From Phaeosaccion multiseriatum (taxonomy: Eukaryota > Protista > Ochrophyta, other classes): DNA of 64,000 nucleotides. The stretch covers positions 1,240,001 to 1,304,000 of the forward strand of contig OZ218963.1 in NCBI GenBank assembly GCA_965112735.1. The letters run 5' to 3'. The translations under genes and the position numbers were made by a program. Of this stretch, positions 2,546 to 53,419 are shown in pieces (positions within the stretch are counted from its first letter, which is position 1; every line of letters starts with the position of its first letter). The notes under the pieces are model-generated. The model was not told the origin of the DNA and made no database searches. It was given only the letters and a program-made list of their open reading frames with translations.

Positions 2546-5500
2546 GGTGGTGGTGGTGGTGGTGGTGGTGATAAGAAGATGGTGGTGGTGGTGGTGGTGG
2601 TGGTGGTGGCGGTGCCGGGATGGCGCGGATAAGAGTCGGTGGATTAGGTTTGTTTTCCTGGCGAGAAGAAGAATGGTGATTATCTTTGCAGTGGGCGGAT
2701 CGAGTTCGTACAAGTACGTTGAGAATGACTGCTTTGAGCACGTTAACGAATGACTGCTTTGAGTACGTTAATGAAAGAGAAGGCGTTCTTGTGCTCAACA
2801 GAGGCATTACAGCAAAAGTAGAGGAGGAGGGCGGCACTCACTCCTTCGGCCTATCTTCTCATTCCTACCTTGTAGCATGAGGCGACCCAGTGGCCGCTCA
2901 TGGACGGCAGAAAGGTGAATGAGCCTACCAGGCTGCTACCCAGAGTCACGTCAGCCTCATAGACTACAGCAGGAGAGGGAACAATTGAGAAAGAGGGGCG
3001 AAAAGGGGGGTTGAGTCGATAGGCCTCCATAGGCCTCCATAGGCGCCCATGCGCCTCGATAGGTCTCTCGCCATGCCGATGTGGAGGCCGTCTGAGAAGG
3101 GCGCATAAGACGGCACAAGCTCCCTCCCTCCCTCCCTCCCTCCCTCTCTCCGTCCCTCCCTCCGTCCCTCCCTCCCTCTCTCTCCCCCTCCCCCCCTACC
3201 TCTCTCCCTCCCTCCCTCCTTCCCTCCCTCCCTCGCTCCCTCCCTCTCTCCCTCCCTCCCTCCCTCCCTCCCTCTCCCCCTCCCCCCCTACCTCTCTCCC
3301 TCCCTTCCTCCTTCCCTCCCTCCCTCTCTCCCTCCCTCTCTCCCTCCCTCCCTCCCTCCCTCCCTCCCTCCCTCCCTCCCTCCCTCCCTCTCTCCTTCCC
3401 TCCCTCCCTCCTTCCCTCCCTCCCTCCCTCCCTCCTTCCCTCCCTCCCTCCCTCCCTTCCTTCCTACCTACCTGTATCTGAGGCGGAGCAATCGGACGTG
3501 CCGTTGAGAATCCACCGAACTGCCATCAGCGGGAGAGGCGGGAGAGGCAAGAGGAGGACAACAGGAAGACAACAGGAAGACAACAGGAGGACAATGGGAG
3601 GACAATGGGAGGACAATGGGCGGAGAGGATGATACCAGTAGGCGGTCAGACGAATGCTCTTTTCGCTTTTGTTTCGTGTACCTTGTTGTGCTCACGTGTC
3701 GTGAATTGCAACCCTGACTCATCTGGTCAGTCAGTCAGTCAGTCAGTCAGTGAGTCAGTCAGTCAGTCAGTCAGTCAGTCAGTCAGTCAGTTAGTCGGTC
3801 AGTCAGTCAGCTCAGCTCAGCTCAGTCAGTCAGTCAGTCAGTCAGTCAGTCAGTCAGTCAAAGCAATACCTTGATCTCCGCTCCTGAGGTGCCCTCCACC
3901 GAATAAAAAGGGTTTGCGGTAGTCCGTGACAGCGATGTCGTCATCCCCGAAGCGATTGGCCGTTACAGTCTCCAGCAGTGCCACGTCAATACTCAGTGAG
4001 CCCCCGTAGTACATGGCCGGCTCGTTGGTGAAAGAGAAGCACAGCCGAGGCGAGGTGCCAGAGAGAGCTTCTGCAAAGGTGAAGGTGTTGGTGAACGCAG
4101 CCCCTAGGGCGGCCACTCCTGTGGTCGAGTTGGCCTCCTCGAAGGCCGAGTACTTGTTCGTGTTGTCACAGTCAGTACCAGTGGTGATCCAGTGCACGGT
4201 GTCGTCGTCCTCATTCTCATGGTCGTCGCCAGCCCGTAGGCCGTAACCGAAGAAGGTTAGTCTCTCAGCCACCCCTGCCACAGCAAGGTCGTTGCTGCCG
4301 ACGCTGCTTACAAAGCCGGCAATGTGCTTGAGCTCGAGACTCATGCTGGGGTACAGTTGGAATTCTTCGTTGCCGAAGCTGTTGGCGGAGAGGAGGGGAG
4401 GGGAGGAGTGGGAGGATGTGTGCATGAGAGGATGCATTCATTGACTTGATAGGAATCACCTTACAAACTGAAACTGAAAGTGTGTACCACGTAGTATTAT
4501 GTATGTACATGAGACGATGGGAGGTGAAGAGGCTGACAGCAGAGACAACAAACACACGCTTACCCACACACGCACACACATACACACACATACACACCTA
4601 CATACACACATATGCACGCACATACACACACACATACAAACACATACACACACATGCACACACACACACACACAGTGACCGTACCGGTAGCATAGACTGA
4701 CGTTGGTCCTATTGCTGGAGGAGACAGCGCCAGCCAGTGCAAACGTCCCTTCGGTGAGGGCGAAGTCCACATCGAGTTGCCCGTCCATTTCGCTGTAAGG
4801 CAGGCCTCCACGGTACCCATCCGGGCTGAGCATTGGTGCTACAGTTTGTGCACTGAGGCAGTCGACACTTGTGACGGTGTCGCCGCCGCCCCCCGAGGTG
4901 TCAACAACCGCCCAGCGTACCTTAGAGACGCCATACGTTAACAATACGTAAGCAAGCGTAAGTAGGGTTAGTAAGGAAGCGCACATACGAGTGCGGCAGA
5001 GACATTGCGCATTTGACTGAGTGACTGTGTGACTGTGTCCGTCCTCCTGCCTGCCTGCTTCACGGGACGGGACAGGTGCGTGACATGAAGGATGAGAAGC
5101 TAAGCGAAGCGTCCAAGGGGAACCAAACGCGTTCGCAATCCCCTTCACCTTGCCTTTCCTTCCTTCCTTCCTTCGTTCCTTCCTTCCTTCCCTCGAAGAA
5201 AAAGGCGAAACTTCTCTCCACCCACCTCATCGCTCTGCTTCAATCCGAAACCGTCGAGGCTGAGTTCCTTCACGTAATTCGCAACCGCCACGCCCTTGCT
5301 CCCCTGCGTGGCTCCCGTCACCTCATACACCTGCTTAACGTCCACACTCATGCCGGTGTATAACTTTGCCTCCCCCCCCCCCTTGCCCGAGAAGAGATAG
5401 CAGAGCCGCAATGGGCCGGCAGTGTGACTGCTGCTCGTGAAGGTCATCTCGATGGAGCTGTTACGCAAATTGAGTTGGGCTTTCTCGGCAGCGGCGGCGT

Positions 5501-5826: not shown

Positions 5827-6226
5827 CACACACACCCACACACCTCGTCAAAGACAAAGTCTCCACTGCACTCTGCGTCCTCAGTGGCGTTGGCGGTGGC
5901 CCAATACACGATGTCTCCGTCCTCCAGGCCGTACCCGGTGAACAAGAAGGTTTTCTCTTGGTCTACGACCGCGACATTGATGTCACCAACCAATACCGAC
6001 ACTTCAAGCACTGAGGGAAGGAAGGGAGTGAGGGGAGAGGGAGGAAGCGAAAGACGGACCGAGAGAGAGGCGGTGTAGTAGCAGCGGTGGAGTGGGAGTG
6101 GGGGCGGGGAGATCAGACGTGCAGGCAGACAGGCAGACAGACAGACAGGCAGACAGACAGACAGACAGACAGGCAGACAGACAGGCAGACAGACAGACAG
6201 ATAGACAGGCAGACAGACAGATAGAC

Positions 6227-6325
<99 letters not shown>

Positions 6326-6362
6326 TAGACAGACAGAATGACAGGCAGACAGATAGACAGGC

Positions 6363-6403
<41 letters not shown>

Positions 6404-7314
6404 GGCAAGCAAGAAGGCAGTCGGAGGGATGCAGGGCAGGGCTCCCAGAAACAACGGCAGGCACGCGGTATGAAACCGTCAAACCGTCTGAGAGGGCGGG
6501 AGGACATCAACACCCCGAGACGCCAACGTGGACGGTCATGTAGTCTTACGCAGCCTTACGTAGTGGTACCTGGTCTTGCAACTCACCTTTCTTATCCACG
6601 ACGGACGAGGCTACAGACGCAGAGTCTATGCGGTACCCGGTGGGAGTTACGGTGGTGACATTGAAGGCCCCCGTCTGCCCAACCTGTTGATTCATGTTGA
6701 TTCATGTGTAAACGAAGCAGTGAAAGCAGTGGTCGATCATCGATTAGAAGTATTAGATCAGTGCAGCAATGGAGAGCGAAGTGGGATGGGGTGGGGTGAG
6801 GTGGGGTGAGGTGGGGTACACGTGATCCATTTCCCTTCAACTTCAACTTCAACTTCAGCTTCAACTTCAGCTTCAGCTCACTTACCTCAGCCGGGGCGAC
6901 GAGCGGCCACAACGTGAGGGCAACTTGCGCACCCGCTGCAATGTCCTCAGAGGACTGCGCAGATGACGACGACGTATTTCGTCTCGCAATGGCAATGCAA
7001 TGCCCCGCCCCGCCTACCGAGCAGCCCAGACCCGTGTAGTTGGTGAAAACCTCCAACTCATCTCGGACAGATGCCTCTTCCGCACTCATGTCACCACCAC
7101 CCTCGCCGCCTGCTACGGTTCGGAGGGTTGAATAGAAGGCGTCTGAATGGGATAGGCCGACACTTGAAGGAATCTCTACCACCACCATGCCGAGTGGAGG
7201 GATGGGGTTGGCGAGGGTGAAGTTGAGGTACAAGCGCGTTGACAGGTTGGCGACGGTGTGTTCTAGCCCCGAAGAAGTGTCCAGGAAAGTTCCTGTGTTT
7301 GTGCGTGTGTGTGT

Positions 7315-7632: not shown

Positions 7633-10600
7633 CACACGCACGCACGGGCAAGCGTAACCGTCGCACCGCCAGACTCTTGACAGGCGTCATGAATGGCCTC
7701 CATCCTCCCCCCTCCCCCTTCTTCCTTCCCTCTCTCCCTTCCTCCTGACCTGGCACGATGTCGAAGCCCTCCCGACTCGGCCGATCCTCGCTGTGGAAGT
7801 CCGCGGACGCCTCATCAATGGACACGTGTCCATCGGTCTGCAGCGTCTTGAGCACTCGAACCCCGTCCTTGAGCCCCTCGTGGAGCGGCAGCTGAACGCC
7901 CGAGATGGACAAGTTCACCTGCGTACCGGCAGGCCACGCACTGCTGTTGAAGCCGTCGGCCGCGGAGGCCAGCCCTGCTGGTTTTAGACTGACGTTGACC
8001 GCCAGCCCGGCTCCATTGCAGGTTGCTTCGACGAGCGAGAGCGACGCATTCACACCCACGGAACTGAATGACTGATCCACTACTTGACATGCATCACTAA
8101 GTACTGTCGTGAAGTTGACAGGAAGGAGAATATACACAAAGCCCCTTGCAGGTAGGCTGTGTTGCGGGGTGAAGCTAATGTGGGCGGTGGTGAAGTTGCC
8201 GGCGACGAGAGAGTCCAGCCGCATGGAAGCCGCACGAACATGCCCAGGAGTGATGGGGGAGAGTGCGCTGGAAGTGCTGACGACCGACGCCCCGGCTGTG
8301 TTGACGGCATACACGCTGAACGTGTACGAGTGTCCGGTCACTAGGCCCGAGGTGATGTTCGTCGCTGAAGCCGCTGGTGACCCCGTGACGTTCCACTGGC
8401 CGGTGTCGCCGTGCCCTTCGTCGTCTGTACCCTCCCATATCACCACATAGCGGGTTATGACACTGTTGCGAGCGTTTGGGGCGTCCCAAGAGACTTGTGC
8501 CTGATTCAATATCTCAGCCCCGGAAACCGCCACCACGTTTGTAGGTTGGGTGGGTTCATCGTACACAGTCACCCCGCTGCCGCCCGCCGTGTTGACGCTC
8601 TCAAAGGCTGTAAAGTTGTTGGAAGAGGTACCCCAAACCTCCGTGGCGGTGAGGCTAGGTTTCCCGGCTGCCGTGTAATTGGAGCAAGTCAAGAAGGCTG
8701 AGCCTTCCATGTCCATCGCACTGTCGGTCCCAAACCCGACCGTCAGTGTTTGGGAGGCATTGGAAAGCGATGGCGTGGCTTGTGCGAGGAGCCCGCAGCC
8801 TCCGTACGACACTTGTACAGTGCTCAGTTCCAGCCGCACCTCCAACCCACCTACTTGAGTCAGACCGGTGTTGTTGGTCTCCAGGAGTGCGACTTTTAGC
8901 TCGTACATTGTCATCGCCTCGAGGTGGTCCTGCCCCAGCTCCCTCCCCGTCGATGTGAGGGATACGTCAATGGCTCCGTATATGCCTGGGGTGACAAGAC
9001 ACGACAACGCGACGGAGGAGGAAAGAGCAGGTCAAACGGAAGTACCAAGAGGAAGAGCGAGTGGAAGAGAGACAGGGCGAGACAGAGGGAGTGACAGTGG
9101 GAAAGACACAGGGCGAGCGAGACCAGAGAGCAACACAAACCAGCCCAAAGCAAAGCAAGAGAGCAAGAGCCAGGCAGGGAGCGACAGAGCAAGAGTGTAA
9201 GACTTGAGGCAAGGACAGGAGCACGGACGCACGCACACACGCACGCACACACGCACGCACACACGCATGCAACACCCACCCCTCGCCCCAGTTAGAAACC
9301 ACGCTCTACCCTCACGCTCCCTGCTACCTCCTCACTCACCCGTGGTGGACGAGACGGTCTGCGACCAGTTGCCCTGCACAGCAGTGTTATACCCGGCTAC
9401 GCGCACCCAGTAGGTGGTGCTCTGGTTGAGGCCCTGCAGCGACACCCTCGTCTCCAGCTCGTCCGTCACATTCGCACTCCACTTGCTTGCAGCGTCCGTC
9501 AACTCCGACTCCAGCGAAGCCTCAGACGTGGCGTACTCCACCACCCACCCATCCACCTCTGGCGAGCCCTCGTCCACCCACGCCAGCTCCAGCACCTCCG
9601 GTTGAGTGCGAGACACTTGCACGTTGGACGGCGTCAGCGGCACCGCGTACACTCGGATGGATGAGCTGTCGAAGACCGTCATGTTGTTGGCCGAAGAGCC
9701 GTACACCTCCGCCGCAGAGAGCATGGGCTTGCCGCCGGAGGTGAGGTTTGTGCACAGCAGGTATGCGTACTCCAGCATGGACGAGTCATCGGCGAAGGCC
9801 ACGGTGAGGGAGCTGTTGTAACTGCCGCCGCTCGACGTGGACAGGCCGCAGTCCCCATGGTCCAGGCTGTCTTGGCTCAGGGTGAGCAGCACTGACAGCC
9901 CGCCCACCTGCACCAGGCCGCTGGTATTGCTCGTCAGCCCCACTCCGATCTGGTGTGCGCGGTCCTCCTCCACGTGGTCCTGCCCCAGCTCCCTCCCCGT
10001 CGATGTGAGGGATACGTCAATGGCTCCGTATATGCCTGGGGTGACAAGACACGACGACGCGACGGAGGAGGAAAGAGCAGGTCAAACGGAAGTACCAAGA
10101 GGAAGAGCGAGTGGAAGAGAGACAGGGCGAGACAGAGGGAGTGACAGTGGAAGAGACAGGGAGAGGCAAAGCATAAGACCAAGAGCCAGGCAGGGAGCGA
10201 CAGAGCAAGAGTGTAAGACTGAGGCAAGGACAGGAGCACGGACGCACGAACGCACCCACGCACACACGCATGCCACACCCACCCCTCGCCCCAGTTAGAA
10301 ACCACGCTCTACCCTCACGCTCCCTGCTACCTCGTCACTCACCCGTGGTGGACGAGATGGTCTGCGACCAGTTGCCCTGCACAGCAGTGTTATACCCGGC
10401 TACGCGCACCCAGTAGGTGGTGCTCTGGTTGAGGCCCTGCAGCGACACCCTCGTCTCCAGCTCGTCCGTCACATTCGCACTCCACTTGCTTGCAGCGTCC
10501 GTCAACTCCGACTCCAGCGAAGCCTCAGACGTGGCGTACTCCACCACCCACCCATCCACCTCTGGCGAGCCCTCGTCCACCCACGCCAGCTCCAGCACCT

Positions 10601-13600
10601 CCGGTTGAGTGCGAGACACTTGCACGCTGGACGGCGTCAGCGGCACCGCGTACACTCGGATGGATGAGCTGTCGAAGGCCGTCATGTTGTTGGCCGAAGA
10701 GCCGTACACCTCCGCCGCAGAGAGCATGGGCTTGCCGCCGGAGGTGAGGTTTGTGCACAGCAGGTATGCGTACTCCAGCATGGACGAGTCATCGGCGAAG
10801 GCCACGGTGAGGGAGCTGCCGTAACTGCCGCCGCTCGACGTGGACAGGCCGCAGTCCCCATGGTCCAGGCTGTCTTGGCTCAGGGTGAGCAGCACCGACA
10901 GCCCGCCCACCTGCACCAGGCCGCTGGTATTGCTCGTCAGCCCCACTCCGATCTGGTGTGCGCGGTCCTCCTCCACGTGGTCCTGCCCCAGCTCCCTCCC
11001 CGTCGATGTGAGGGATACGTCAATGGCCCCGTATATGCCTGGGGTGACAAGACACGACGACGCGACGGAGGAGGAAAGAGCAGGTCAAACGGAAGAGGAA
11101 GAGCGAGTGGAAGAGACAGGGCGAGACAGAGGGAGTGACAGTGGGAAAGAGACAGGGAGAGGCAAAGCATAAGACCAAGAGCCAGGCAGGGAGCGACAGA
11201 GCAAGAGTGTAAGACTGAGGCAAGGAGAGGAGCACGGACGCACGAACGCACCCACGCACACACGCATGCCACACCCACCCCTCGCCCCAGTTAGAAACCA
11301 CGCTCTACCCTCACGCTCCCTGCTACCTCGTCACTCACCCGTGGTGGACGAGATGGTCTGCGACCAGTTGCCCTGCACAGCAGTGTTATACCCGGCTACG
11401 CGCACCCAGTAGGTGGTGCTCTGGTTGAGGCCCTGCAGCGACACCCTCGTCTCCAGCTCGTCCGTCACATTCGCACTCCACTTGCTTGCAGCGTCCGTCA
11501 ACTCCGACTCCAGCGAAGCCTCAGACGTGGCGTACTCCACCACCCACCCATCCACCTCTGGCGAGCCCTCGTCCACCCACGCCAGCTCCAGCACCTCCGG
11601 TTGAGTGCGAGACACTTGCACGTTGGACGGCGTCAGCGGCACCGCGTACACTCGGATGGATGAGCTGTCGAAGGCCGTCATGTTGTTGGCCGAAGAGCCG
11701 TACACCTCCGCCGCAGAGAGCATGGGCTTGCCGCCGGAGGTGAGGTTTGTGCACAGCAGGTATGCGTACTCCAGCATGGACGAGTCATCGGCGAAGGCCA
11801 CGGTGAGGGAGCTGCCGTAACTGCCGCCGCTCGACGTGGACAGGCCGCAGTCCCCATGGTCCAGGCTGTCTTGGCTCAGGGTGAGCAGCACCGACAGCCC
11901 GCCCACCTGCACCAGGCCGCTGGTATTGCTCGTCAGCCCCACTCCGATCTGGTGTGCGCGGTCCTCCTCCACGTGGTCCTGCCCCAGCTCCCTCCCCGTC
12001 GATGTGAGGGATACGTCAATGGCCCCGTATATGCCTGGGGTGACAAGACACGACGACGCGACGGAGGAGGAAAGAGCAGGTCAAACGGAAGAGGAAGAGC
12101 GAGTGGAAGAGACAGGGCGAGACAGAGGGAGTGACAGTGGGAAAGAGACAGGGAGAGGCAAAGCATAAGACCAAGAGCCAGGCAGGGAGCGACAGAGCAA
12201 GAGTGTAAGACTGAGGCAAGGAGAGGAGCACACGCGCACGCACATGCGCACGCACACACGCACGCACACACGCACGCACGCAGACACGCACGCCACACCC
12301 ACCCCTCGCCCCAGTTAGAAACCACGCTCTACCCTCACGCTCCCTGCTGCCTCCTCACTCACCCGTGGTGGACGAGACGGTCTGCGACCAGTTGCCCTGC
12401 ACAGCAGTGTTATACCCGGCTACGCGCACCCAGTAGGTGGTGCTCTGGTTGAGGCCCTGCAGCGACACCCTCGTCTCCAGCTCGTCCGTCACATTCGCAC
12501 TCCACTTGCTTGCAGCGTCCGTCAACTCCGACTCCAGCGAAGCCTCAGACGTGGCGTACTCCACCACCCACCCATCCACCTCTGGCGAGCCCTCGTCCAC
12601 CCACGCCAGCTCCAGCACCTCCGGTTGAGTGCGAGACACTTGCACGCTGGACGGCGTCAGCGGCACCGCGTACACTCGGATGGATGAGCTGTCGAAGGCC
12701 GTCATGTTGTTGGCCGAAGAGCCGTACACCTCCGCCGCAGAGAGCATGGGCTTGCCGCCGGAGGTGAGGTTTGTGCACAGCAGGTATGCGTACTCCAGCA
12801 TGGACGAGTCATCGGCGAAGGCCACGGTGAGGGAGCTGCCGTAACTGCCGCCGCTCGACGTGGACAGGCCGCAGTCCCCATGGTCCAGGCTGTCTTGGCT
12901 CAGGGTGAGCAGCACCGACAGCCCGCCCACCTGCACCAGGCCGCTGGTATTGCTCGTCAGCCCCACTCCGATCTGGTGTGCGCGGTCCTCCTCCACGTGG
13001 TCCTGCCCCAGCTCCCTCCCCGTCGATGTGAGGGATACGTCAATGGCTCCGTATATGCCTGGGGTGACAAGACACAACGACGCGACGGAGGAGGAAAGAG
13101 CAGGTCAAACGGAAGTACCAAGAGGAAGAGCGAGTGGAAGAGACAGGGCGAGACAGAGGGAGTGACAGTGGGAAAGAGGCAGGGAGAGGCAAAGCATAAG
13201 ACCAAGAGCCAGGCAGGGAGCGACAGAGCAAGAGTGTAAGACTGAGGCAAGGAGAGGAGCACACGCGCACGCACATGCGCACACACACACGCACGCACAC
13301 ACGCGCGCACGCACGCACGCCACACCCACCCCTCGCCCCAGTTAGAAACCACGCTCTACCCTCACGCTCCCTGCTACCTCCTCACTCACCCGTGGTGGAC
13401 GAGACGGTCTGCGACCAGTTGCCCTGCACAGCAGTGTTATACCCGGCTACGCGCACCCAGTAGGTGGTGCTCTGGTTGAGGCCCTGCAGCGACACCCTCG
13501 TCTCCAGCTCGTCCGTCACATTCGCACTCCACTTGCTTGCAGCGTCCGTCAACTCCGACTCCAGCGAAGCCTCAGACGTGGCGTACTCCACCACCCACCC

Positions 13601-14608
13601 ATCCACCTCTGGCGAGCCCTCGTCCACCCACGCCAGCTCCAGCACCTCCGGTTGAGTGCGAGACACTTGCACGCTGGACGGCGTCAGCGGCACCGCGTAC
13701 ACTCGGATGGATGAGCTGTCGAAGGCCGTCATGTTGTTGGCCGAAGAGCCGTACACCTCCGCCGCAGAGAGCATGGGCTTGCCGCCGGAGGTGAGGTTTG
13801 TGCACAGCAGGTATGCGTACTCCAGCATGGACGAGTCATCGGCGAAGGCCACGGTGAGGGAGCTGCCGTAACTGCCGCCGCTCGACGTGGACAGGCCGCA
13901 GTCCCCATGGTCCAGGCTGTCTTGGCTCAGGGTGAGCAGCACCGACAGCCCGCCCACCTGCACCAGGCCGCTGGTATTGCTCGTCAGCCCCACTCCGATC
14001 TGGTGTGCGCGGTCCTCCTCCACGTGGTCCTGCCCCAGCTCCCTCCCCGTCGATGTGAGGGATACGTCAATGGCCCCATATATTCCTTGGCGGGGGCAGA
14101 AGGATTTTGTCACAGCGAAGGACGTTAGCATACTAGGGCAAGGGCATTGAAGAGAGGAAGCCACAACACGGGTTTTGCTCTGCGTGCTATCATACCCTCC
14201 ACGCTAAGATTTGACCGCACGCCCTTTTTGCTCACCCGTAGACCTCGATATAGACTCAGATGAGCTTCCTGTGCCGTTTACATTAAATCCAGCCACTTTG
14301 ATGAAGTATGTCGTGCTCTGATTTAAGCCCGTCAAGATCTTGCTCTTTTGGGCAGCAGAAGCCGACCATTTATCCTCGCGAGTCTCGCTTGCATCCGGCG
14401 ATGCCTGTGAAGTGCTGTACTCCACAGTCCAGCCCTCTGCGCTCGGCGATCCGTCATCTACCCACCCGACCTCTAGCGTCGCCGGCTGGGCCGACAAGAC
14501 GTCCAGCTCGGTGGGCGGCAAGGGCAGACCACTCTGGGCCGAGCTCTGCTCCACGCGGACGAGGAGCAACAGGGCCAAAACGAGTGTCTGGGCCAGCAGC
14601 AGCATCAT
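1..14608 (-). CDS. Giant secreted/cell-surface protein: signal peptide, 7 fibronectin type III domains and Ig-like repeats (3' end outside window; >=2,634 aa in window)
   Basis: Signal peptide MMLLLAQTLVLALLLLVRVEQSSAQ. FN3 motifs (P..P..V.V...LELAW...GWVVEY...GLNQSTTYWVRVAGYN...G.WS). Many N-x-S/T sequons. Phase-consistent GT-AG exons: 14608-14236, 14085-13390, 13058-12363, 12034-11339, 11038-10343, 10035-9340, 8985-7750, 7292-6886, 6683-6587, 6010-5844, 5576-5226, 4920-4685, 4378-3870, 3519-3472, 2963-2869, 2447-2274, 1693-1624, 1346-1226, 728-339, 148-<1. Confidence 0.85.
925..1236. repeat. 33-38-bp intronic minisatellite (consensus gatacgcctactgctcatgctcacactcaccatt); each unit carries a copy of the exon end and 5' splice site
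   Basis: About 8 copies of ctcaccattg (minus strand CAATG|GTGAGT). The last copy, at 1221-1230, is the real exon/intron junction. Confidence 0.9.
3120..3460. repeat. Intronic (CCCT)n/(GAGG)n microsatellite
   Basis: Directly visible ~340-bp imperfect tetranucleotide tract next to the donor at 3471. Confidence 0.95.
3726..3859. repeat. Intronic (GTCA)n microsatellite
   Basis: Directly visible tetranucleotide tract next to the donor at 3869. Confidence 0.95.
6121..6410. repeat. Intronic (GACA)n microsatellite
   Basis: Directly visible ~290-bp tract. It produces the spurious CLSV-repeat ORFs. Confidence 0.95.
8924..14085 (-). repeat. Tandem array of five ~1.0-kb exon+intron units (696-bp exon plus 300-354-bp intron), plus the first ~60 nt of a sixth, divergent exon
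   Basis: Exon starts at 14085, 13058, 12034, 11038, 10035 and 8985 (periods 1027, 1024, 996, 1003, 1050). The translated cassettes differ at only a handful of residues. Introns differ mainly in (CACG/CA)n length and small indels. Confidence 0.97.
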
Positions 14609-14993: not shown

Positions 14994-15543
14994 CTATGCT
15001 TTGAGTGCGTACCGCCGGACGGGGAAGTTGGCCGCTCGCTTGGCTGCGCGAGTCGTCTTGAGGCCGGCCTGCTTCTTGGTGAGTTGCCTGCGAATGGCAC
15101 GGGTCTTCTTCGCCCTCAAGTCGAGGGGAATGTACTTGGCCTTGGCATACTGCTCCCGGAGCTGTGTGGGGTGGGGTAGTGTCGGGCGGGCAAACACACA
15201 TTGGGGTCGGAGGCGGTGTAGGGTGAGGAGAGGGCGCGACGAGAAGTGTACTACATTCCTTCTACTTTGCGGACCCGCATAATGAACATCGCCCTAACAG
15301 GAGAGTGGAAGACAAAGCTGCTGCCACACACTAAACTAAGGCATTGGTTGCGCTGGCTGCTGCTGCTTCTCGCCCCTCTCAAACCTCTTGTCACCGCCAC
15401 TGACCTTCTCCTTTTGCGTCTGGTTGTAGACGGTGAGGACGCGGGCGATGGACTTGCGCACCACCTTGATCTTCGCCAACTTGGAGGCGGCACCGGCGGT
15501 CACCTTGGCCACGCGCAGCTGTGTGTGTGTGCGTGTGTGTGTG

Positions 15544-15588
<45 letters not shown>

Positions 15589-17033
15589 GCGTGTGCATAT
15601 ACGATACGTCGATGGAGTGGGGGTGCGGGGTGCATGATGGAGAAGGAGCAAGTGGTCATGCATAGCATTGGATGATAGAAGAGCAAGTGGCCATGCATTG
15701 CAATGGATGATAGAAGGAAGGGCATTGCAATTGCGCGGGGGAGAGCCGCGTCGCGCCACGTGGATGAGCACCTTACGTAAGCACCTTTTACGAAGCAGCA
15801 TTGGCAAAAAGACCCAAGGAAGGGGAGGGCAGAGAGGGAGAAGAGAGAGACTATGGCAGGAGAAGAAGATGCGACAAACAAGCCTCCGCCGCAGGAGCAG
15901 CGTCAATACCAGTGCCGAACCACCAAGCCTCCCCCGCTTGCGACAACCAACGCACGCACCTGCGAGAGCTCGAGCCTGAGGTCCTCAAGCTGCCTGCTCA
16001 GGTCAGCCTTGCTCTTAGTGCGGAGCTCGTGCGCCTTGACCTTGACTGTAAGCGAGAAGGGGGGAAGAGAAGACGGGGTGGAGCAGATGAAGGGGCGGCT
16101 GGGTGAGTGAGAGGGAGGGGCGGGGGGAGGCTTCGACCTTCGAGTCACAAAAGAGGGTAGAATAGAAGGAAGACCAGGAGACTGTCTGCGGAGACCGGAC
16201 GCGTAGGAAAAATACCGCCTGCCGCAGATACGTCTCGAATCTTCTTGGTCCTTCCTGACTGTGTAAGGACTGGACTGCCATGCCAGAGCTCTCCCAAACG
16301 CCCCATCATCATCATCCTCCTCCTCCTCCTCCTCCTTAGCCCTCTTCGCTCCGCTCGCCCTCTCCTCGTCGTCATCCACACTCCTCTGGCCCATAAAACA
16401 AGCGTTAACGACAGCCGCCAAGGTGACCAAAAGCTCTGTGCTGCTCAGCCAGGGGTTCTTCACACAAATCGCTCCGGAAGGTCAGGCCACAAAGCGAAGA
16501 GGGGCCGGAGGCCACGGAATGCGGCTGCAGTATACCAAATCGCTGTCCAATTAAGGGACTCCGCCTCCATTGCTGACAGTTGTGCTGCTGCGGCTCCTTC
16601 TCACCACATGTCCGTCATGCTCAGATCCTGCCCTCAAGCGTTTGCGGGGCTATCATAGCAGCAGCAGTAGCAGTAGCAGCAGTATGGTTCGCCCTCAACA
16701 TATACGAGCCCGGGCTGTCACTGAATACCAACCCCACCTCTCGCCCCCCCCAAGTGGCCTGTGCTTCCCAAGCTTCCCCCACGCAGGCCATTATTGTTGG
16801 CTGAGAAATGTGGAAGCGTATGATCCACCGTACGGGATCTGATGTTAGCATTGCAGTCAGCCAGCTCCCAAGGCATCCTTTCGCCGTGGACGGTACGACA
16901 GCGGCAGGCAGCAGCAGCAAAATGCCAGCCCACAGGAGAGACCTTGCTGCCAATGCCAACATTCTTGCCTTCCGACTCGCGCAAGGTGAGAGAAGCCGGA
17001 GAAACCGAAAGAGCACTTCTGTCCACCACGAGG

Positions 17034-17070
<37 letters not shown>

Positions 17071-17227
17071 ATATGCTGCTGCTGCTGCTGCTCTCCTGCA
17101 GCTGCTGATAACACCTTGGCTCTCTCCCCCTCCTTCCATCTCCCTTCTTCACCCTCACACATCTGCAAGCTACGTCAAGTATCACACAGCGCTTCCGAAG
17201 CCGCTTGCCCCCTCCATACTCACCCAT
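14994..17227 (-). CDS. RPL35: 60S ribosomal protein L35 (uL29), 123 aa
   Basis: Exons 17227-17224 (ATGG|GTGAGT), 16045-15960, 15518-15405 and 15161-14994 give [63 protein letters not shown]...[19 protein letters not shown]...[10 protein letters not shown]. Sequence and length (372 nt) are typical of uL29. Confidence 0.96.
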
Positions 17228-17417
17228 GTTCTCCGTGTTAATCTGCTCACTTTAAGCCTCCTCCGCCAGTCCCTGGTCAGCCACCAAATCGAAACTTAGA
17301 ACTTAATGAGACTTACGTAAGGAAGGGTTTCCGATCGACGTGTTTTGCTGCTGGCTGCCGGCGGCTATCGCCCGACCCTCTAGCCACCCCCTTGTTTGGG
17401 GTCTGCAGGTAGTGAGG
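17228..17417. promoter_or_regulatory. Probable bidirectional promoter region for RPL35/LSM5 (190 bp between ATGs)
   Basis: Divergent start codons at 17227 (-) and 17418 (+). Contains the palindrome CTTACGTAAG (17312-17321). Confidence 0.6.
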
Positions 17418-17988
17418 ATGGCGGGCAGATTGCTGCCGCTGGAGCTGATAGACAAGTGTATTGGATCCAGGCTTTGGATCATCATGAAAGGAGACAAGGA
17501 GGTGGTGGGGACGCTGCGAGGCTTCGATGATTTTGTCAACATGTGAGTGGGATCTCAACTCTCTTCAGAGGGAGGAAGGTGGATGGGGCGAGTGGGTGCA
17601 GGCAAAGCTTTGGAGGGTCTTGAAGCAAGATGGGTGCTTAGCCCATCATCTGCTTGGTTCAATTGAACGAACGTCCCACGACAAGCCTACTATCAACCGC
17701 TGTTCTCTTCCTCGCGCCACCTCGTTTCGAAGTCAACTCACGCGGCGGCCTCCTTCTGTACTTGTTCTGCACCCACCCCCCTCCTCCAATCGACTCTTGT
17801 GACCAAGCAGGGTTCTAGAGGACGTTACGGAGTACGAGATTGGGGTAGACGGGAGCAAGCGGAAGGTCCAGCTGGACCAGATTTTGCTCAATGGGAATAA
17901 CATTGTGTTACTAGTACCTGGGTCTGGGCCAGAAGAGGAGTCTGCACCAGCGCCTTCAGTAGAGCAGCAGGATGGAGCAGGCGTATAG
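17418..17988 (+). CDS. LSM5: U6 snRNA-associated Sm-like protein LSm5
   Basis: Exons 17418-17542 and 17811-17988: [51 protein letters not shown]...[18 protein letters not shown], the diagnostic LSm5 Sm1/Sm2 sequence. Confidence 0.96.
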
Positions 17989-18257
17989 GGGCGAGCCAAA
18001 GCATCGATCCCATGTGGGCCACTGCTACTCTGTTCTCACGAGGATGATGCAAACCTGACAAATATCAAATACTACTTTGAAGTACTTCTTTGGGGGAGGG
18101 AGACAACTCCGACAAACTCAATTTAACGTAACAAGACGACGAGAGAAGAGCTTGTGGTGCACACTGAAAGGGGGGGCATTTGCTGCCTAGCAGTTGTGCT
18201 GGTGCTGTATGGCACCGCGGTGCTCTTTTGAATGACTCTCTCTCTCTGCCTGCCTGT

Positions 18258-21173
18258 TCACCTTCTCAACTTGTCCCTCGCCCTGCTCTTGCTGCTGCTA
18301 CTACCGCTTGTTCTCGCACGTGACGCCCCTCCTCCCGCTGTTGTTGCACTGGCTCCCCCGAGACTAAATGCGGCCCCAAACCCACCGGCAGCAGCGGGGG
18401 GGGGTGCGAACCCACCCGCTGCGCTGAAGGATCCGCTCCCCACCGCAGGGGGCCCAGCTGCCAAGGACGGAGTAAAGGAAGTAGGAGCAGCAGCAGCAGC
18501 AGCAGCTGGTGTGCTGCCACCGCCCCCGAACGAGAAAGTCGAAGGAGCAGCGGGAGGACCTGCCGCCGAGGCTCCTCCTCCACCACCGAAAGAAAAAGTC
18601 TCAGAGGAGGGTGGTGGTGCTGGTGCCGCAGCCCCTGTTGGTGCACTGTTCCCGAAGGAGAAGGCCGCGGCACTTGGTGCTGCTGGTGCCGCTGGTACTG
18701 CTGGTGCTGCTGGTACCGCTGGTACTGCTGGTACTGCTGCTGTCGTTGATGTTGAATTGGGTGTGCTGGTGACACCTTGGCCAAAGCTGAACGTCGTTGG
18801 TGCAGGTGGGGCTGCTGGTTTTGATACATCAGGTGCAGGTGGTACTGCTGCTGCTGCTGCTGTTGCTGCTGCTGGTGATGGTGCGAACCCGCCAAACGAA
18901 AACGCTGCTGCTGGCCCCGCTCCTCCTGATGACCCCGTTGCTGGTCCGGCTGCTTCGCCTTTCGTGGAAAGGACACTGGAAGATGACGCCGTGGCTTCTC
19001 CGAAGACGACTGGAGTAGGTGGCTCTGCCCCTGCCCCTGCTGCAGGATGATTCGCAGAGTTGGTCGAGCTCACCGGCGCAGCAGCTCCGAAAGTGAAGCC
19101 AGCAGCAGGAGCAGGTGCAGTGGAAAGTGAAGGAACAGCAGCAGAAGGATCTGCCGAGGCTGCGACGGTTACAACGGGTGCCGTGACCGAGGCGGCCGCA
19201 GGGGCTTGGGCTGGTGGAGGTGGTGCTTGTCCTCCGCTGGCAAAGGATGACACGGTAGCGGAAGGAGGGGCAGCTGTTGTTGAAGCAGCAGAGGCGGCAT
19301 CTTCCGCGAGCGGCTTTAAGTCCTGCTGGGAGAGAGACTGAAACTGCTGCTGCTGCTCCTGCTGCTCCTGCTGCTCCTCCTCCTCTTCCTCTTGATGGGT
19401 GGCCGGAATGGCTGGCGAGTAGCGGTACCTCTGATCCGGAGCTTGGGAGGCCGAGGACAGAATAGCCCATACTCGTTTTTCTGCCTCTTGGCTCTCCATT
19501 CCCCCGCTGGCACCCACATCATAGCTCCCCCTTTTGTGGTGCAAGTACTGCGGCTGACGCTGATGCTGCTGCTGCTGCTGCTGCTGTGGCTGCTGTCCTT
19601 CCTGCCGCCTATCAGTGGCAGCTGTGATCGCAGCGACGGCGGCGTCCGCGGTGGGTCTAAAGGCCGAGGAAGATGACCCTCCCCAGAGGACTGTGGGCAC
19701 CGCAGACGGTCGTGGCGGTGGTGGGGCGTGAGAGTTCCGACGCGCCCGCTTTGAGTGTCCCTCGTCCCCCTCCTCCTCGTCCTCCTCGTCGTCCTCCTCG
19801 TCGTCCTCTGCGCCCTTCCTGCCCACGTGAGATTGAGGAAGAGGCCGCTTGGATCCCTTCTTCTTCGACGCCATTTCGCCCCCGTCCCCCGCCTTCTCCT
19901 CCTCCTCCTCCTCGTCGTCGTCGTCCTCGTCGTCTTCCATAAAGTACCTCCCCCCTGTGCTGCCGCCGCTACTGTGCCGCCTGGTCTGCGCCGTCTTCAT
20001 CTGAGAACCATCACCACCATCACTGTCTGCGCTGCCGCTTGCGTCTTCTTCCTCCATACTATCATCGCTGTCGCTACCCCCGTGAATGTAGTCTTCTTCT
20101 ATGATTTCCTCAATGTCGATCTCCTCCTCCCCTCTCCGAATCTTGCCAGCCCTCTGGTGTTCGGTGTCGGAGTCACGTCTGCCTTTTCGCTTGCCCAAAG
20201 CCGAAGCAGGAGATGGTTCTGCCACTTCTTCCGCCACTGAGCCCAGCTGGTGCTGCTTCTTCGTCGGCGGAGATATATCTTGCTCATGATGTTGTTGTTG
20301 TTCTTGTTGTTGTTTTTGTCGCTGCTGCTGCTGCTGCTCATCCCCTCGCCGACGCTTCCCCAAATTTCCTCCTGGCTGGGGCTGTTGCTGCTGCTGCTGC
20401 TGGAAAGAAGGATGACACTGCCGCTCTTGCCGTGGCTCCTGCTTCCAGGTTTCACTCAGTGGCGACTTTTGGCGGCGCGGCTGCTGCTGCTGCTGCTGCT
20501 GCGGCTGGCGCCTACCCACTCCAGGTGTTGCTGCTGCTGCCGCTGTCCCGGGACCATCCCCTTCGCTTCTATGGTCCTTCCTTCGCCGGGCACCCACGCC
20601 CTCGCGGCCATCGCTCTTCCAAGACCTCTCTTTGTACTCCCCAGCCACCACAGATGGCGCTTGCCCTCCTCCTCCTCCACCTGCTCCAAAGGCTGCCGCT
20701 GCTGCTGCTGCTCGCCTGCTTTCCCTTCTCCTCCTCCGTACTGCCGCTTCCTCCCTCCTCATCCTGCGAGCGTGAATCTGGCCCAGAATTGCCGCTATTC
20801 CGGTGAAGGGGAGCAATGCCAACACGCTGTCGAAGGCCAAGCTCATCAAGATACTCGACACGCACACGCCCACCCGCATAAACGGTGGCAACTTCTCCCA
20901 GCCCTGCAAAATCTTTGAGGAGTCGAACCCGGCTCTCGGAGTGCCACTGCTCCCGCCACCATCCTCATCGAAGTCTTCATCATCCCGATTGTCGAAGGGA
21001 ATGGCCAGACCGACCCAAATGGCCGCCCCAAGCGCCGCCGCCTTGAGCACCAGGCTCACACCCACACCTGACCCGCCCAACAACAACGGCAGCCGAACCA
21101 GGAGGTTGGTGACTAGTATTGAGGCCATCAGTGGCAGCGGAAGCTGCAAGCGCGACAAGCGGATCTTCACCAT
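18258..21173 (-). CDS. Putative transmembrane FG-nucleoporin (POM121-like architecture), 971 aa, intronless
   Basis: Hydrophobic N-terminal segments at about aa 14-61 and 98-133. Basic NLS-like clusters (LGKRRRG, LGKRKGRR, SKKKGSKR, SKRARR). Six F(S/T)FG motifs plus VVFG/GGFG/FSLG in Ala/Pro/Ser/Thr spacers. Basic tail SRARDKLRR. Confidence 0.65.
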   Translation of the reverse strand: MVKIRLSRLQLPLPLMASILVTNLLVRLPLLLGGSGVGVSLVLKAAALGAAIWVGLAIPFDNRDDEDFDEDGGGSSGTPRAGFDSSKILQGWEKLPPFMRVGVCVSSILMSLAFDSVLALLPFTGIAAILGQIHARRMRREEAAVRRRRRESRRAAAAAAAFGAGGGGGGQAPSVVAGEYKERSWKSDGREGVGARRRKDHRSEGDGPGTAAAAATPGVGRRQPQQQQQQQPRRQKSPLSETWKQEPRQERQCHPSFQQQQQQQPQPGGNLGKRRRGDEQQQQQRQKQQQEQQQHHEQDISPPTKKQHQLGSVAEEVAEPSPASALGKRKGRRDSDTEHQRAGKIRRGEEEIDIEEIIEEDYIHGGSDSDDSMEEEDASGSADSDGGDGSQMKTAQTRRHSSGGSTGGRYFMEDDEDDDDEEEEEEKAGDGGEMASKKKGSKRPLPQSHVGRKGAEDDEEDDEEDEEEGDEGHSKRARRNSHAPPPPRPSAVPTVLWGGSSSSAFRPTADAAVAAITAATDRRQEGQQPQQQQQQQHQRQPQYLHHKRGSYDVGASGGMESQEAEKRVWAILSSASQAPDQRYRYSPAIPATHQEEEEEEQQEQQEQQQQFQSLSQQDLKPLAEDAASAASTTAAPPSATVSSFASGGQAPPPPAQAPAAASVTAPVVTVAASADPSAAVPSLSTAPAPAAGFTFGAAAPVSSTNSANHPAAGAGAEPPTPVVFGEATASSSSVLSTKGEAAGPATGSSGGAGPAAAFSFGGFAPSPAAATAAAAAVPPAPDVSKPAAPPAPTTFSFGQGVTSTPNSTSTTAAVPAVPAVPAAPAVPAAPAAPSAAAFSFGNSAPTGAAAPAPPPSSETFSFGGGGGASAAGPPAAPSTFSFGGGGSTPAAAAAAAPTSFTPSLAAGPPAVGSGSFSAAGGFAPPPAAAGGFGAAFSLGGASATTAGGGASRARTSGSSSSKSRARDKLRR

Positions 21174-21286: not shown

Positions 21287-24200
21287 ATGGCGAGTGGCTA
21301 TCGCGGAGAGCTAAACCTGCAGCTGGAGCGCCATGGCAAAGGCACGTATCATCAACCGCAGGGTGGTGGATTCATCGCATACGAGGGCACCTACGAAGAC
21401 GGGATCAAGAACGGGGTGGGGAAAGTTGTGTTGGGGAGCGCGACGCCAAGCAGCTGCATCGTATACGAGGGCGAGATTTCAAAAGGAGAAATTGAGGGCA
21501 ATGGCGTCAAGACCTGGCCTGACGGAAGACGGTGAGTGCGTGGCCCACCCTTGGGGGGAGGGGGAGGGCGAGGGTTACACAGCCGCCAACCTTCATTGCC
21601 ATGGAAAACCACACCAACCCTTTCTTCACATACCTCTTCCACGATGTGGCCAGGTATGAAGGGAGCTTCAAGAGGGGCGAGCATGACGGATTTGGTTCCT
21701 TCGTCCACCCCGTCACAGGACAGGAGTACCAAGGAGAGTGGAAAGACAACCGCTTTCACGGAATTGGCAGCCTAAAACTTCCCTTCGGAGGCGGCTCCTA
21801 CCAAGGAGGCTTTCGATGCCACAAGTAGGTTCGCCGAGGGGAGATAGTGCAAAGTTGCATAGGGGGGGGGAGGGCGGTGGGCGCACAAGAGAGAGGCTGG
21901 AGACTGGGGGCGGGGCGACCAAGCAACCCGTACCAGCCAATCGCAGCTTTCGGAGTGGCTCGTCCTCCCCTCTCCCCCCGTCCCTGAGCAATCAAAAATA
22001 GAAGGTCTTTCCCTACCAATTCATTACCATGTACGCCTGCGTCTCCTCTCTCTCTCTCTCTCTCCACGCGCCTCACCCCCACCCGACAGGTACCACGGAG
22101 AAGGCCGGCTGGTGCTGTTGCAGCAGTCGCAGCAGCAGCAGGGTCGACAGGGGGGGGAAGCCTCTTCTCGTTGTGCGCCGTCCTCGTCCTCATCCTCTTC
22201 TCTCAAGTCGCTACCAGTGGGCAGGGAGAGTGGTCCGGCCTATATCTTCAAGTATGAAGGCGACTGGTGCGACGGCCAGAAGCACGGCTTCGGAGAGGCG
22301 CGCTACCGTGGAGGGAGTCTTTACATCGGGCCTTTTAGTGAGGACAAGCGCGCTGGCCAGTGCGAGAGATACGAGTGTGCAGTTACCGGAATCACGTGGA
22401 CGGGAGCCTGGCTGACGGATCGGCCGGTGGGCAGTGCTTCGCTCGTGGAGGTTCAAGTCGACAACTCTCCGGCGATGCGAAGCTTAGATTCTATCATCGA
22501 AGAGGAGGAGGAGGAGGATGCTGCAGCGGCAGCGGTGGCCGCAGGAGCTAGCAAGAAGGGGAAAGGCAAGAGCACTCGCGCCTCTGTCAGTGGGGGCGCA
22601 GCAGCTTCTGCAACGAAAGGAAAGGGCAGGAAGGGCGTAGCAACGGAGACCACTACGTTTTCATGCTTTGGTGAGGAAAGGCTCACCATCGGTCTGAGGA
22701 AGGATGGCAGCGTCCCGCCGTTTTGGTGCATTTGCAGGGTAGGGGGTGGCGAGGACGGCGAGGGAGGCGGGGGAGGTAGGGATGAAACGGATGAAACGGC
22801 TGCGGAGGAAGGGAAGCACGAGGAGGGCGAGGCCGGGGAGGAGGGCGAAGAAGGCACGAGCTCGGCCATAGCTGTAGTACAGCGGCAGAGGGACCACGTG
22901 GCGGTGGAGACTGGACGGCGACTTGCGTTACGAGTTCACTTTGGCACCTTTACGCAACAAGAGCAGGAGCAGCAGCAGGAGGCCGAGAAGGGCACTTCCA
23001 AAGGAAAGGCAGCAGCAGAGGTGGCAGAGGAGGAGGTCAATGCACTGCCGGAGCCTGTACTCGAGCTATCAGAGCCCCTGATGGTCGAAATGACGCCTCC
23101 CACTGCAGAGGACATTGGGGAGGCCCTGCATCGATTCCCCTTGCTCGGCCTCGTGGCGCTGTTCCGCACGCACTCATGCATCCGTACGCGACATGCGCTG
23201 ACGACGGAGGCGATGCGCTCCGCCTCCTCCTCCTCCTCCTCCTTGTCTGGCGACGCTGGCGTTACAGAAAACGACGGCCTTCCAGAGGGCGTAACCGAGG
23301 ATGAGAATGAGCACAAGGAGGGTGGGAATGGCGCTGGTACTCTCGATGGTGAGGAGGGCAATGTCGACGGCGAAGATGGGGGCCGCAGAGCACCAAGCAC
23401 AGCGGAGGCGGTGTCGAAGATGGTGTGTAGTGTGGGAGGACAGCCCGCCCTCGTCTTTCGGGAAGCACGATCGTCTGTGTCTTCTTCTTCTTCGTCATCG
23501 CTCCATTTGCTGCCCGTCACCGTCAGCACTCCCCGCTTCTCCACTGTCACCAAATCGCTTGCTCCGGTGGTGGGTGCAGCTACGTCAAATCAAGAGCATG
23601 CCTGTGTTGAGTCTACTGGCGCTGGCAGGGCTGCTTTGAAGGCTGCTACCGCTGGTGCTGCTGCTCTTGCGCTCGACCCCACACTGCCGTTCGCCATTTT
23701 GCTGGACTTTTACTATCAGCTTCCTGCGCCCACGGCAGTGGGGCCAGTAGAGGAGGAGAAGGAGGAGGAGGAGGAGGAGGAGGAGGAGGAGGAGGAGGAG
23801 GAGGAGGAGGAGGAGGAGGAGGAGGAGGAGGAGGAGGAAGAGAAAGAAGAGGGACGTTATTCTGGCGCCGGTCCCGCTGGTGAGCAGCAGCAGTGGGAGG
23901 TACCGCTAGTGTCCTGTGGGCCTGTTCTGAACCTCAAACTCAAACTTGTCATGGAGATGGAGGAAATGAAGGTGGCGGGGAGAGAGTCGCTCGATGAGGG
24001 GATGACGACGGAGGAGGTGTCCGCCAAAGAGGAACGACGGAGCAGTACCGCGGAACGACGGAGCAGTACAGCGGAGGAGGAGAAGGGGGCTGAGGAAGAT
24101 GTGAAGGCGTGTTGTTTCCAGCAACCCCGGTGTGTCGGGCTCCGGGTCATCCTCGATGGAGGCAGTGAGGACATACGCTTCAGTACTACTAGTAGCAGCA

Positions 24201-53374: not shown

Positions 53375-53419
<45 letters not shown>

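Follow-up and report, generated by a model that had tools for sequence, protein, structure and literature searches.

A candidate pore-membrane FG nucleoporin with a POM121-like order of parts, encoded by a single-exon gene

A 64,000-nucleotide stretch of eukaryotic DNA (contig OZ218963.1, positions 1,240,001 to 1,304,000; the whole stretch is referred to here as the window) encodes on its reverse strand a 971-residue protein, whose parts point to a nucleoporin. The candidate combines an array of FSFG motifs in an almost uncharged disordered domain with a charged stretch of approx. 500 residues bearing motifs that resemble nuclear localization signals (NLSs) and with hydrophobic helices at the N-terminus. 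On the strength of these sequence features, we see roughly an even chance that it is a lineage-specific pore-membrane nucleoporin with phenylalanine-glycine (FG) repeats and thus a functional analogue of POM121 and of TtPom121 from Tetrahymena. In the following, amino acid (aa) positions refer to the candidate and nucleotide positions to the window.

Results

The C-terminal domain carries a non-random FSFG array

The low-charge FG domain (aa 641-950; 18324..19253, (-)) presents its FG motifs in spacers of Ala, Pro, Gly, Ser and Thr and contains eight charged residues in 310. FTFG is located at position 693, FSFG at positions 758, 795, 838, 860 and 880, FG at 724 and 932 and FSLG at 936. The six F[ST]FG motifs were not reached in any of 100,000 shuffles of aa 640-971, the shuffle maximum being two, and each of the five remaining frames of the 64-kb window holds between zero and two FxFG motifs. 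FSFG is encoded as TTT-TCG-TTT-GGC, TTC-AGC-TTT-GGC, TTC-TCC-TTC-GGG, TTT-TCT-TTC-GGT and TTC-TCG-TTC-GGG, and Tandem Repeats Finder detected short repeats of 3-27 nt only over the candidate region. Since the Ser codons derive from both the TCN and the AGC family, the motif is kept at the protein level, and the codon diversity is an argument for translation of this frame. Taken together, these results show an FSFG array that is non-random and conserved at the protein level.

AlphaFold2, run from the single sequence without an alignment, assigned a predicted local distance difference test (pLDDT) score below 50 to aa 616-965 with the exception of single residues. The FG array is embedded in a predicted-disordered, low-complexity domain, as is generic for FG nucleoporins. 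Behind this domain, the protein ends in a basic tail (aa 951-971, SRARTSGSSSSKSRARDKLRR; 18261..18323, (-)) with eight K/R in 21 residues.

The candidate is encoded by a single uninterrupted exon

The whole open reading frame (ORF; 18258..21173, (-)) consists of 971 codons and a stop codon and is uninterrupted from its ATG at 21173 (context caccacgATGg, with A at -3 and G at +4) to the stop. No ATG, GTG or TTG was found in the 69 open codons upstream of this ATG. The longest competing frame at the locus is an antisense ORF of 272 aa (18232-19050, (+)), which faces the FG domain, has a Leu-rich start and an Ala/Gly/Pro-rich body and most likely results from GCN-rich codons on the opposite strand.

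A codon-usage log-odds score, trained on the other exons of the window, favored the ORF frame over aa 12-92, was ambiguous over aa 112-150 and took neutral values close to zero across the FG domain. Since the exons used for training have a different composition, the score is informative for the N-terminus only. The neutral values over the FG domain, the GC-richness of the region, its CTG/CAG runs and the antisense 272-aa ORF would all agree with the view that there is no gene here, the ORF being a by-product of GC-rich low-complexity DNA, or that the true gene is the antisense frame at 18232-19050 (+). We consider this extremely improbable in the light of three observations: by our own arithmetic, 971 open codons are expected by chance with a probability of ~2e-14 at ~3.2% stops per random codon, the FSFG motifs show synonymous diversity, and the non-repetitive N-terminus scores as coding. 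The candidate is a real single-exon gene.

A long charged stalk with clustered basic residues connects the FG domain to the N-terminus

Composition, K/R clustering and low pLDDT delimit a disordered charged stalk between aa 155 and 640 (19254..20711, (-)). It begins with a basic and Gln-rich part (to ~340), continues with an acidic block (aa 341-470) containing 49 D/E in 130 residues and ends with a Gln-rich part; poly-Gln runs lie on both sides of the acidic block. Charged residues make up ~33% of the stalk vs 2.6% of the FG block. Clusters of basic residues were found at aa 136-154, immediately in front of the stalk, and within it at aa 196-199 (RRRK), 273-277 (KRRR), 328-347 (KRKGRR...KIRR), 437-443 (KKK..KR) and 475-479 (KRARR). 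Five runs of at least three K/R occur in aa 138-640 where 1.17 are expected, a number reached by 0.3% of the shuffles. At the motif level, two matches to the K-K/R-x-K/R pattern and three matches to the bipartite pattern of NLSs were obtained.

The pLDDT remained below 50 across the stalk except for two helices at aa 272-298 (Gln-rich) and 598-610 (Glu/Gln), and ~80% of all residues in the AlphaFold2 model of the whole protein fall below this value. The peptide ESQEAEKRVWAILSSASQAP (aa 560-579), which lies within the stalk, had been put forward in a preliminary description of the sequence as a helix loosely resembling the 'ARRILQSLEKMSSP' motif of Nup153. Its pLDDT is below 50 and no helix appeared there in either AlphaFold2 run covering it, a weak negative given the single-sequence model, and no Nup153 profile of Pfam matched. 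All other parts named in that description are borne out by the data, i.e. the N-terminal hydrophobic helices by their hydropathy and the AlphaFold2 helices (see below), the several NLS-like clusters by the excess of K/R runs, the disordered acidic/Gln-rich middle by composition and pLDDT, and the six F(S/T)FG repeats (five FSFG and one FTFG) with the FSLG and the basic tail by the sequence itself.

Hydrophobic helices at the N-terminus might anchor the protein in a membrane

Kyte-Doolittle means of at least 1.5 over 19 residues were confined to windows starting at aa 11-42 (peak 1.95) and 95-117 (peak 2.12). In the same regions, AlphaFold2 predicted helices at aa 13-31, 36-56/57, 85-93 and 97-158/163 with a pLDDT of 58-87; the same helices appeared when aa 1-165 were folded alone (mean pLDDT 65.7). 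The first two helices, H1 (aa 13-31) and H2 (aa 36-57), are joined by a GGSG linker (21003..21137, (-); Kyte-Doolittle peaks 1.87-1.95) and preceded by an N-terminal tail with three K/R (K3, R5 and R8) and no acidic residue. They are followed by an acidic loop (aa 58-96, DNRDDEDFDEDGGG...; 20886..21002, (-)), which includes the short helix 85-93 and has 10 D/E vs 4 K/R counted over aa 61-98. The long hydrophobic helix H3 (aa 97-135; 20769..20885, (-); Kyte-Doolittle peak 2.12) belongs to the continuous AlphaFold2 helix 97-158/163 (pLDDT 70-87) and could cross the membrane once as a long span or fold back as a hairpin made of two short ones. Directly behind it lies an Arg-rich juxtamembrane segment (aa 136-154, RRMRREEAAVRRRRRESRR; 20712..20768, (-)) with 11 Arg in 19 residues, which matches the bipartite NLS pattern. 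The hydrophobic helices are apolar on all faces and not amphipathic, the highest hydrophobic moments being found elsewhere in the protein. Each of them contains one charged residue (R27, K44 and D115).

The helices allow two predicted topologies, with the membrane spanned either by H2 and H3 or by four segments, H3 then forming a hairpin. The charges around the helices fit the positive-inside rule. According to this rule, the Arg-rich segment after H3 would place the 830-residue C-terminal part on the cytoplasmic/nucleoplasmic side in both topologies, which is a requirement for a nucleoporin.

A basic n-region followed by a hydrophobic stretch at the N-terminus is also what a secreted or surface protein rich in Ala, Pro, Ser and Thr would display, with H1 as signal peptide and FG motifs unrelated to the nucleus; the C-terminal third is indeed A/P/S/T/G-rich and contains AVPAVPAAP runs. 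For such a protein, a 500-residue stretch in which poly-Gln alternates with acidic and basic parts and K/R are clustered would be atypical. The C-terminus is basic and not hydrophobic, and the regular conservation of FSFG is a further argument against secretion, which we regard as very improbable.

Heh2 exemplifies a transmembrane (TM) segment plus an NLS on a long unfolded linker as a layout for sorting to the inner nuclear membrane. The same order of parts is known from POM121 (PMC3069009), and the candidate might accordingly reside in the inner nuclear membrane or the endoplasmic reticulum (ER) and not be a stable pore component, its NLSs and linker serving targeting while the FG motifs ease its own passage or are incidental. 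The number of FG-type motifs, which is ~10 only, would be compatible with this. In contrast, five FSFG motifs and one FTFG motif that are preserved at the protein level within an uncharged domain form a nucleoporin signature, and no inner-membrane protein with a comparably large FG region has been identified (PMC3069009). Residence in the inner membrane or ER is thus a distinctly unlikely explanation.

No relatives were detected in sequence and structure collections

A full HMMER search against 1.84 billion representative proteins returned no match at E<=0.001, not even the candidate itself. Word searches with the whole protein and with aa 1-150 revealed no relatives, an exact-sequence look-up found the candidate sequence to be absent from the protein collection, and a metagenome scan with aa 1-150 gave 600 pattern matches, none of which was confirmed. 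In Pfam-A, neither a nucleoporin nor any other family reached the cut-off with the whole protein (E<=1) or with four pieces (E<=10); the hydrophobic part (aa 1-160) produced sub-threshold matches to unrelated domains of unknown function only. The FG-repeat profiles of Pfam, none of which matched in the whole-protein and piecewise scans, are biased to GLFG and Nsp1-type repeats and therefore provide a weak negative for this candidate.

Sequence searches of the PDB, run with the complete protein and separately with its last 140 aa, gave no accepted relative. A match to DHX37 (E 0.013) was dismissed as low complexity and a match to an esterase (E 0.25) was likewise dismissed. Foldseek comparison of the aa 1-165 model, which is of low confidence, with the PDB yielded no match at E<=0.001; two nuclear-pore entries (E 5-8, TM-scores 0.16-0.17) were considered noise. 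Deep homology, which the preliminary description had offered as one explanation, was undetectable for POM121, Nup153 or Nup1 in Pfam, in the PDB sequences and among the 1.84 billion representatives.

As the HMMER search missed the candidate itself, the collection lacks the source proteome. The lack of a homologue means that there is none outside an unsampled lineage; it does not imply that the protein is unique to one species. The gene for ribosomal protein L35 (uL29) in the same window (14997-16046, (-)), in which three exons with GT-AG introns are recognizable, was used for comparison exon by exon. The exon-3 reference began in the stop-free translated intron upstream, an extension by which the length window admits full-length L35, and only residues 46-99 were scored. 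No identical protein was found, the best identity over exon 3 being 76%. Summed over the exons, the best identity was 74% (Nannochloropsis oceanica), followed by Tribonema with 70%, both being stramenopile algae. For exon 3, the Toxoplasma and Plasmodium ribosome chains matched worse than the top-ranked PDB chains, and an apicomplexan origin, considered in view of the poly-Q/A/S runs and the giant genes of low complexity, was rejected for this reason. The L35 comparison weakly favors stramenopiles over Toxoplasma and Plasmodium. An L35 identity not exceeding 76%, together with the failure of the candidate to find itself, suggests that neither the source proteome nor that of a close relative is present in the collection of 15 billion proteins.

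Weighing a membrane-anchored nucleoporin against a soluble one

Several points weigh against a pore-membrane nucleoporin. The FG density of approx. one per 35 residues is at the low end of the range of FG nucleoporins. The Pfam scans, nucleoporin families included, gave no match, and no homologue was found, so that neither the TM region nor the layout can be shown to be conserved. Hessa-type sums for the best 19-residue windows, calculated as simple, approximate sums over the biological hydrophobicity scale, were +2.0 (aa 40-58), +2.2 (aa 103-121) and +3.4 kcal/mol (aa 15-33) and are marginal for insertion. Furthermore, the ATG of a divergent (+) gene with MORN repeats is located at 21287, and because it lies just 114 bp from the candidate ATG, the transcription start of the candidate could fall inside the ORF, in which case translation would begin at M99, M110 or M138; a start at codon 138 would remove every hydrophobic helix.

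An internal start at one of these codons, or helices that lie on the membrane without spanning it, would turn the candidate into a soluble or peripheral FG nucleoporin. Little space for a promoter and a 5' untranslated region is left by the 114-bp gap between the two ATGs, the hydrophobic helices combine a charged residue each with marginal insertion energies, and the codon-usage signal is ambiguous for aa 112-150, all of which would agree with such a protein. It is less easily reconciled with the codon-usage support for the ORF frame over aa 12-92, with helices that are apolar all round and with the A at -3 and G at +4 of the ATG at 21173. Taking both sides into account, we hold a soluble or peripheral protein to be unlikely and retain the pore-membrane FG nucleoporin as the preferred explanation.

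Neighboring genes and repeats

The divergent gene is arranged head-to-head with the candidate and is very large: the region 21287-~60055 (+), two thirds of the window, appears to form one gene. The MORN repeats are in its first exons (21287-21828), two pairs of MIB_HERC2 and Laminin_G_3 domains are encoded in the ORFs 42744-44201 and 50908-57591, and a HECT domain is found at 58538-60055. The gene also contains long poly-Glu and poly-Gly runs.

On the other side, a 2-kb gap (16200-18257) extends from the candidate stop codon to L35. It contains short ORFs only, with poly-Gln, poly-Ala and poly-Ser derived from a (GCT)23 run at 17040-17107, and these ORFs had no Pfam match; the gap may represent a 3' untranslated region, a promoter or a small gene. 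L35 itself carries a (TG)38 microsatellite in intron 1 (15520-15595). Because its exon 1 begins directly after a ...cttacag acceptor without an ATG, the start codon is probably on an upstream mini-exon. Five tandem units of ~1 kb follow at ~9200-14200 (-), with a spacing of 996-1027 bp and 94-100% identity. A fibronectin type III domain is encoded in a 213-aa exon of each unit, and the larger gene to which the units belong reaches ~7583; the near-identity of the units suggests a recent expansion or a risk of assembly collapse. Three long simple repeats were noted, a 34-nt unit present 7.9 times (953-1221), (CTCC) x 88 (3120-3473) and (CAGA)n x ~70 (6122-6404). The last of these, which reads as CLSV repeats in the ORF lists, is probably intronic. 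Scans of the window for Rfam families and tRNAs found nothing.

Discussion

A possible mode of action of the candidate can be derived from its motif content and from precedents. The N-terminal helices would insert into the ER or outer nuclear membrane. Importin alpha/beta might then bind the NLS-like clusters, which are 60-340 residues away from the membrane on an unfolded linker, and pull the candidate to the nuclear side by way of the pore membrane, as has been shown for POM121. The charged stalk of ~500 residues would hold the nearly uncharged, cohesive FxFG domain in the transport channel in the manner of a di-block 'tree' of the Forest model (for the di-block FG concept see PMC5222603), and transport receptors would be bound in the channel by the FxFG domain and the basic tail. 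The membrane anchors of nuclear pores are known to be evolutionarily plastic (PMC4758718).

Among known nucleoporins, POM121 is the obvious reference. Its TM segment occupies residues 35-55, its five NLSs lie at 266-513 and its FG repeats are C-terminal; the NLSs bind importin alpha/beta and are required for pore targeting via the inner nuclear membrane (PMC3069009). The candidate shares the order of an N-terminal anchor, an NLS-type cluster a few hundred residues off the membrane and a long disordered C-terminal FG region with spacers of the S/T/P/A type, and its predicted topology likewise has most of the protein facing the pore. The two differ in the anchor, which in POM121 is a single TM with a lumenal N-terminus of ~30 aa and in the candidate two to four hydrophobic helices with an acidic loop, and the candidate has no sequence match to the family profile in Pfam or to PDB sequences. 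Of the POM121-like architecture proposed initially, the linear order of the parts is retained, but not the single TM of POM121.

POM121 has been reported to be restricted to vertebrates (PMC2951903, PMC3069009), and the preliminary description took the combination of TM, NLS and FG repeats to define this protein. This definition is too narrow. TtPom121 of Tetrahymena (TTHERM_00312730) carries both a TM and an NLS in its N-terminal part, has FG repeats at the C-terminus and was localized experimentally to the nuclear side of macronuclear pores (PMC5450191), and Nup221 of P. berghei is an FG nucleoporin with two predicted TM domains, which was proposed as a pore anchor in an organism where NDC1, GP210 and POM121 are undetectable (PMC6062611). 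TtPom121 is the closest precedent outside animals, a likeness drawn from its published description; it has one predicted TM and was not returned by the full HMMER search with the candidate, which gave no matches at all. Nup221 resembles the candidate as an FG nucleoporin with its own predicted TM domains. In contrast to the candidate, it is of Nup98/Nup100-like origin (PMC6062611) and far larger, and no sequence relation was found in the full HMMER search. Trypanosome TbNup65 is a further lineage-specific nucleoporin that bears its own TM anchor (PMC4758718). Its TM is C-terminal, however, and the protein, an orthologue of Nup35/Nup53, contains an RRM domain and is not of the FxFG type.

With Nup153 and yeast Nup1, the candidate has in common FxFG repeats followed by a basic tail as well as NLS-like motifs, a resemblance that is not basket-specific. 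A basic C-terminal tail after FxFG repeats is present in both of these proteins, which use amphipathic helices and not TM segments, and the spacers of yeast Nup1, Nup2 and Nup60 are charged, unlike the nearly uncharged spacers of the candidate. The candidate also differs from Nup153 and Nup1 in that the Pfam scans revealed no nucleoporin family match, no zinc fingers and neither a conserved N-terminal region for pore targeting nor a conserved C-terminal motif. A location in the nuclear basket, as suggested in the preliminary description, cannot be derived from FxFG motifs alone. To PNET1/TMEM209, NDC1, Pom33/TMEM33 and Pom34 the membrane region showed no match in sequence (Pfam, aa 1-160) or fold (Foldseek, low-confidence model).

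No part of the nuclear pore is less conserved than its membrane proteins, and in many protist lineages no anchor is known (PMC4758718, PMC6062611). As a lead from sequence for which no orthologues are at hand, the candidate could offer an entry point to the nuclear pore of a poorly sampled lineage. It may be that the POM121-type layout of anchor, NLS cluster and FG domain arose independently in a further, unsampled eukaryotic lineage (possibly a stramenopile, on the weak ribosomal-protein evidence) beside vertebrates and ciliates, although we rate this at somewhat less than an even chance. If true, a third unrelated protein with anchor, NLS and FG domain would favor selection for function over inheritance of the layout, the likely functions being importin-guided delivery to the inner membrane and display of the FG domain. 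A membrane-tethered, importin-addressable FG domain would then represent a recurrent, convergent way to seed or anchor pores from the inner nuclear membrane. Compared with POM121 and TtPom121, the candidate is best regarded as one more, unrelated case of a known architecture, its variation being a multi-helix anchor with an acidic loop.

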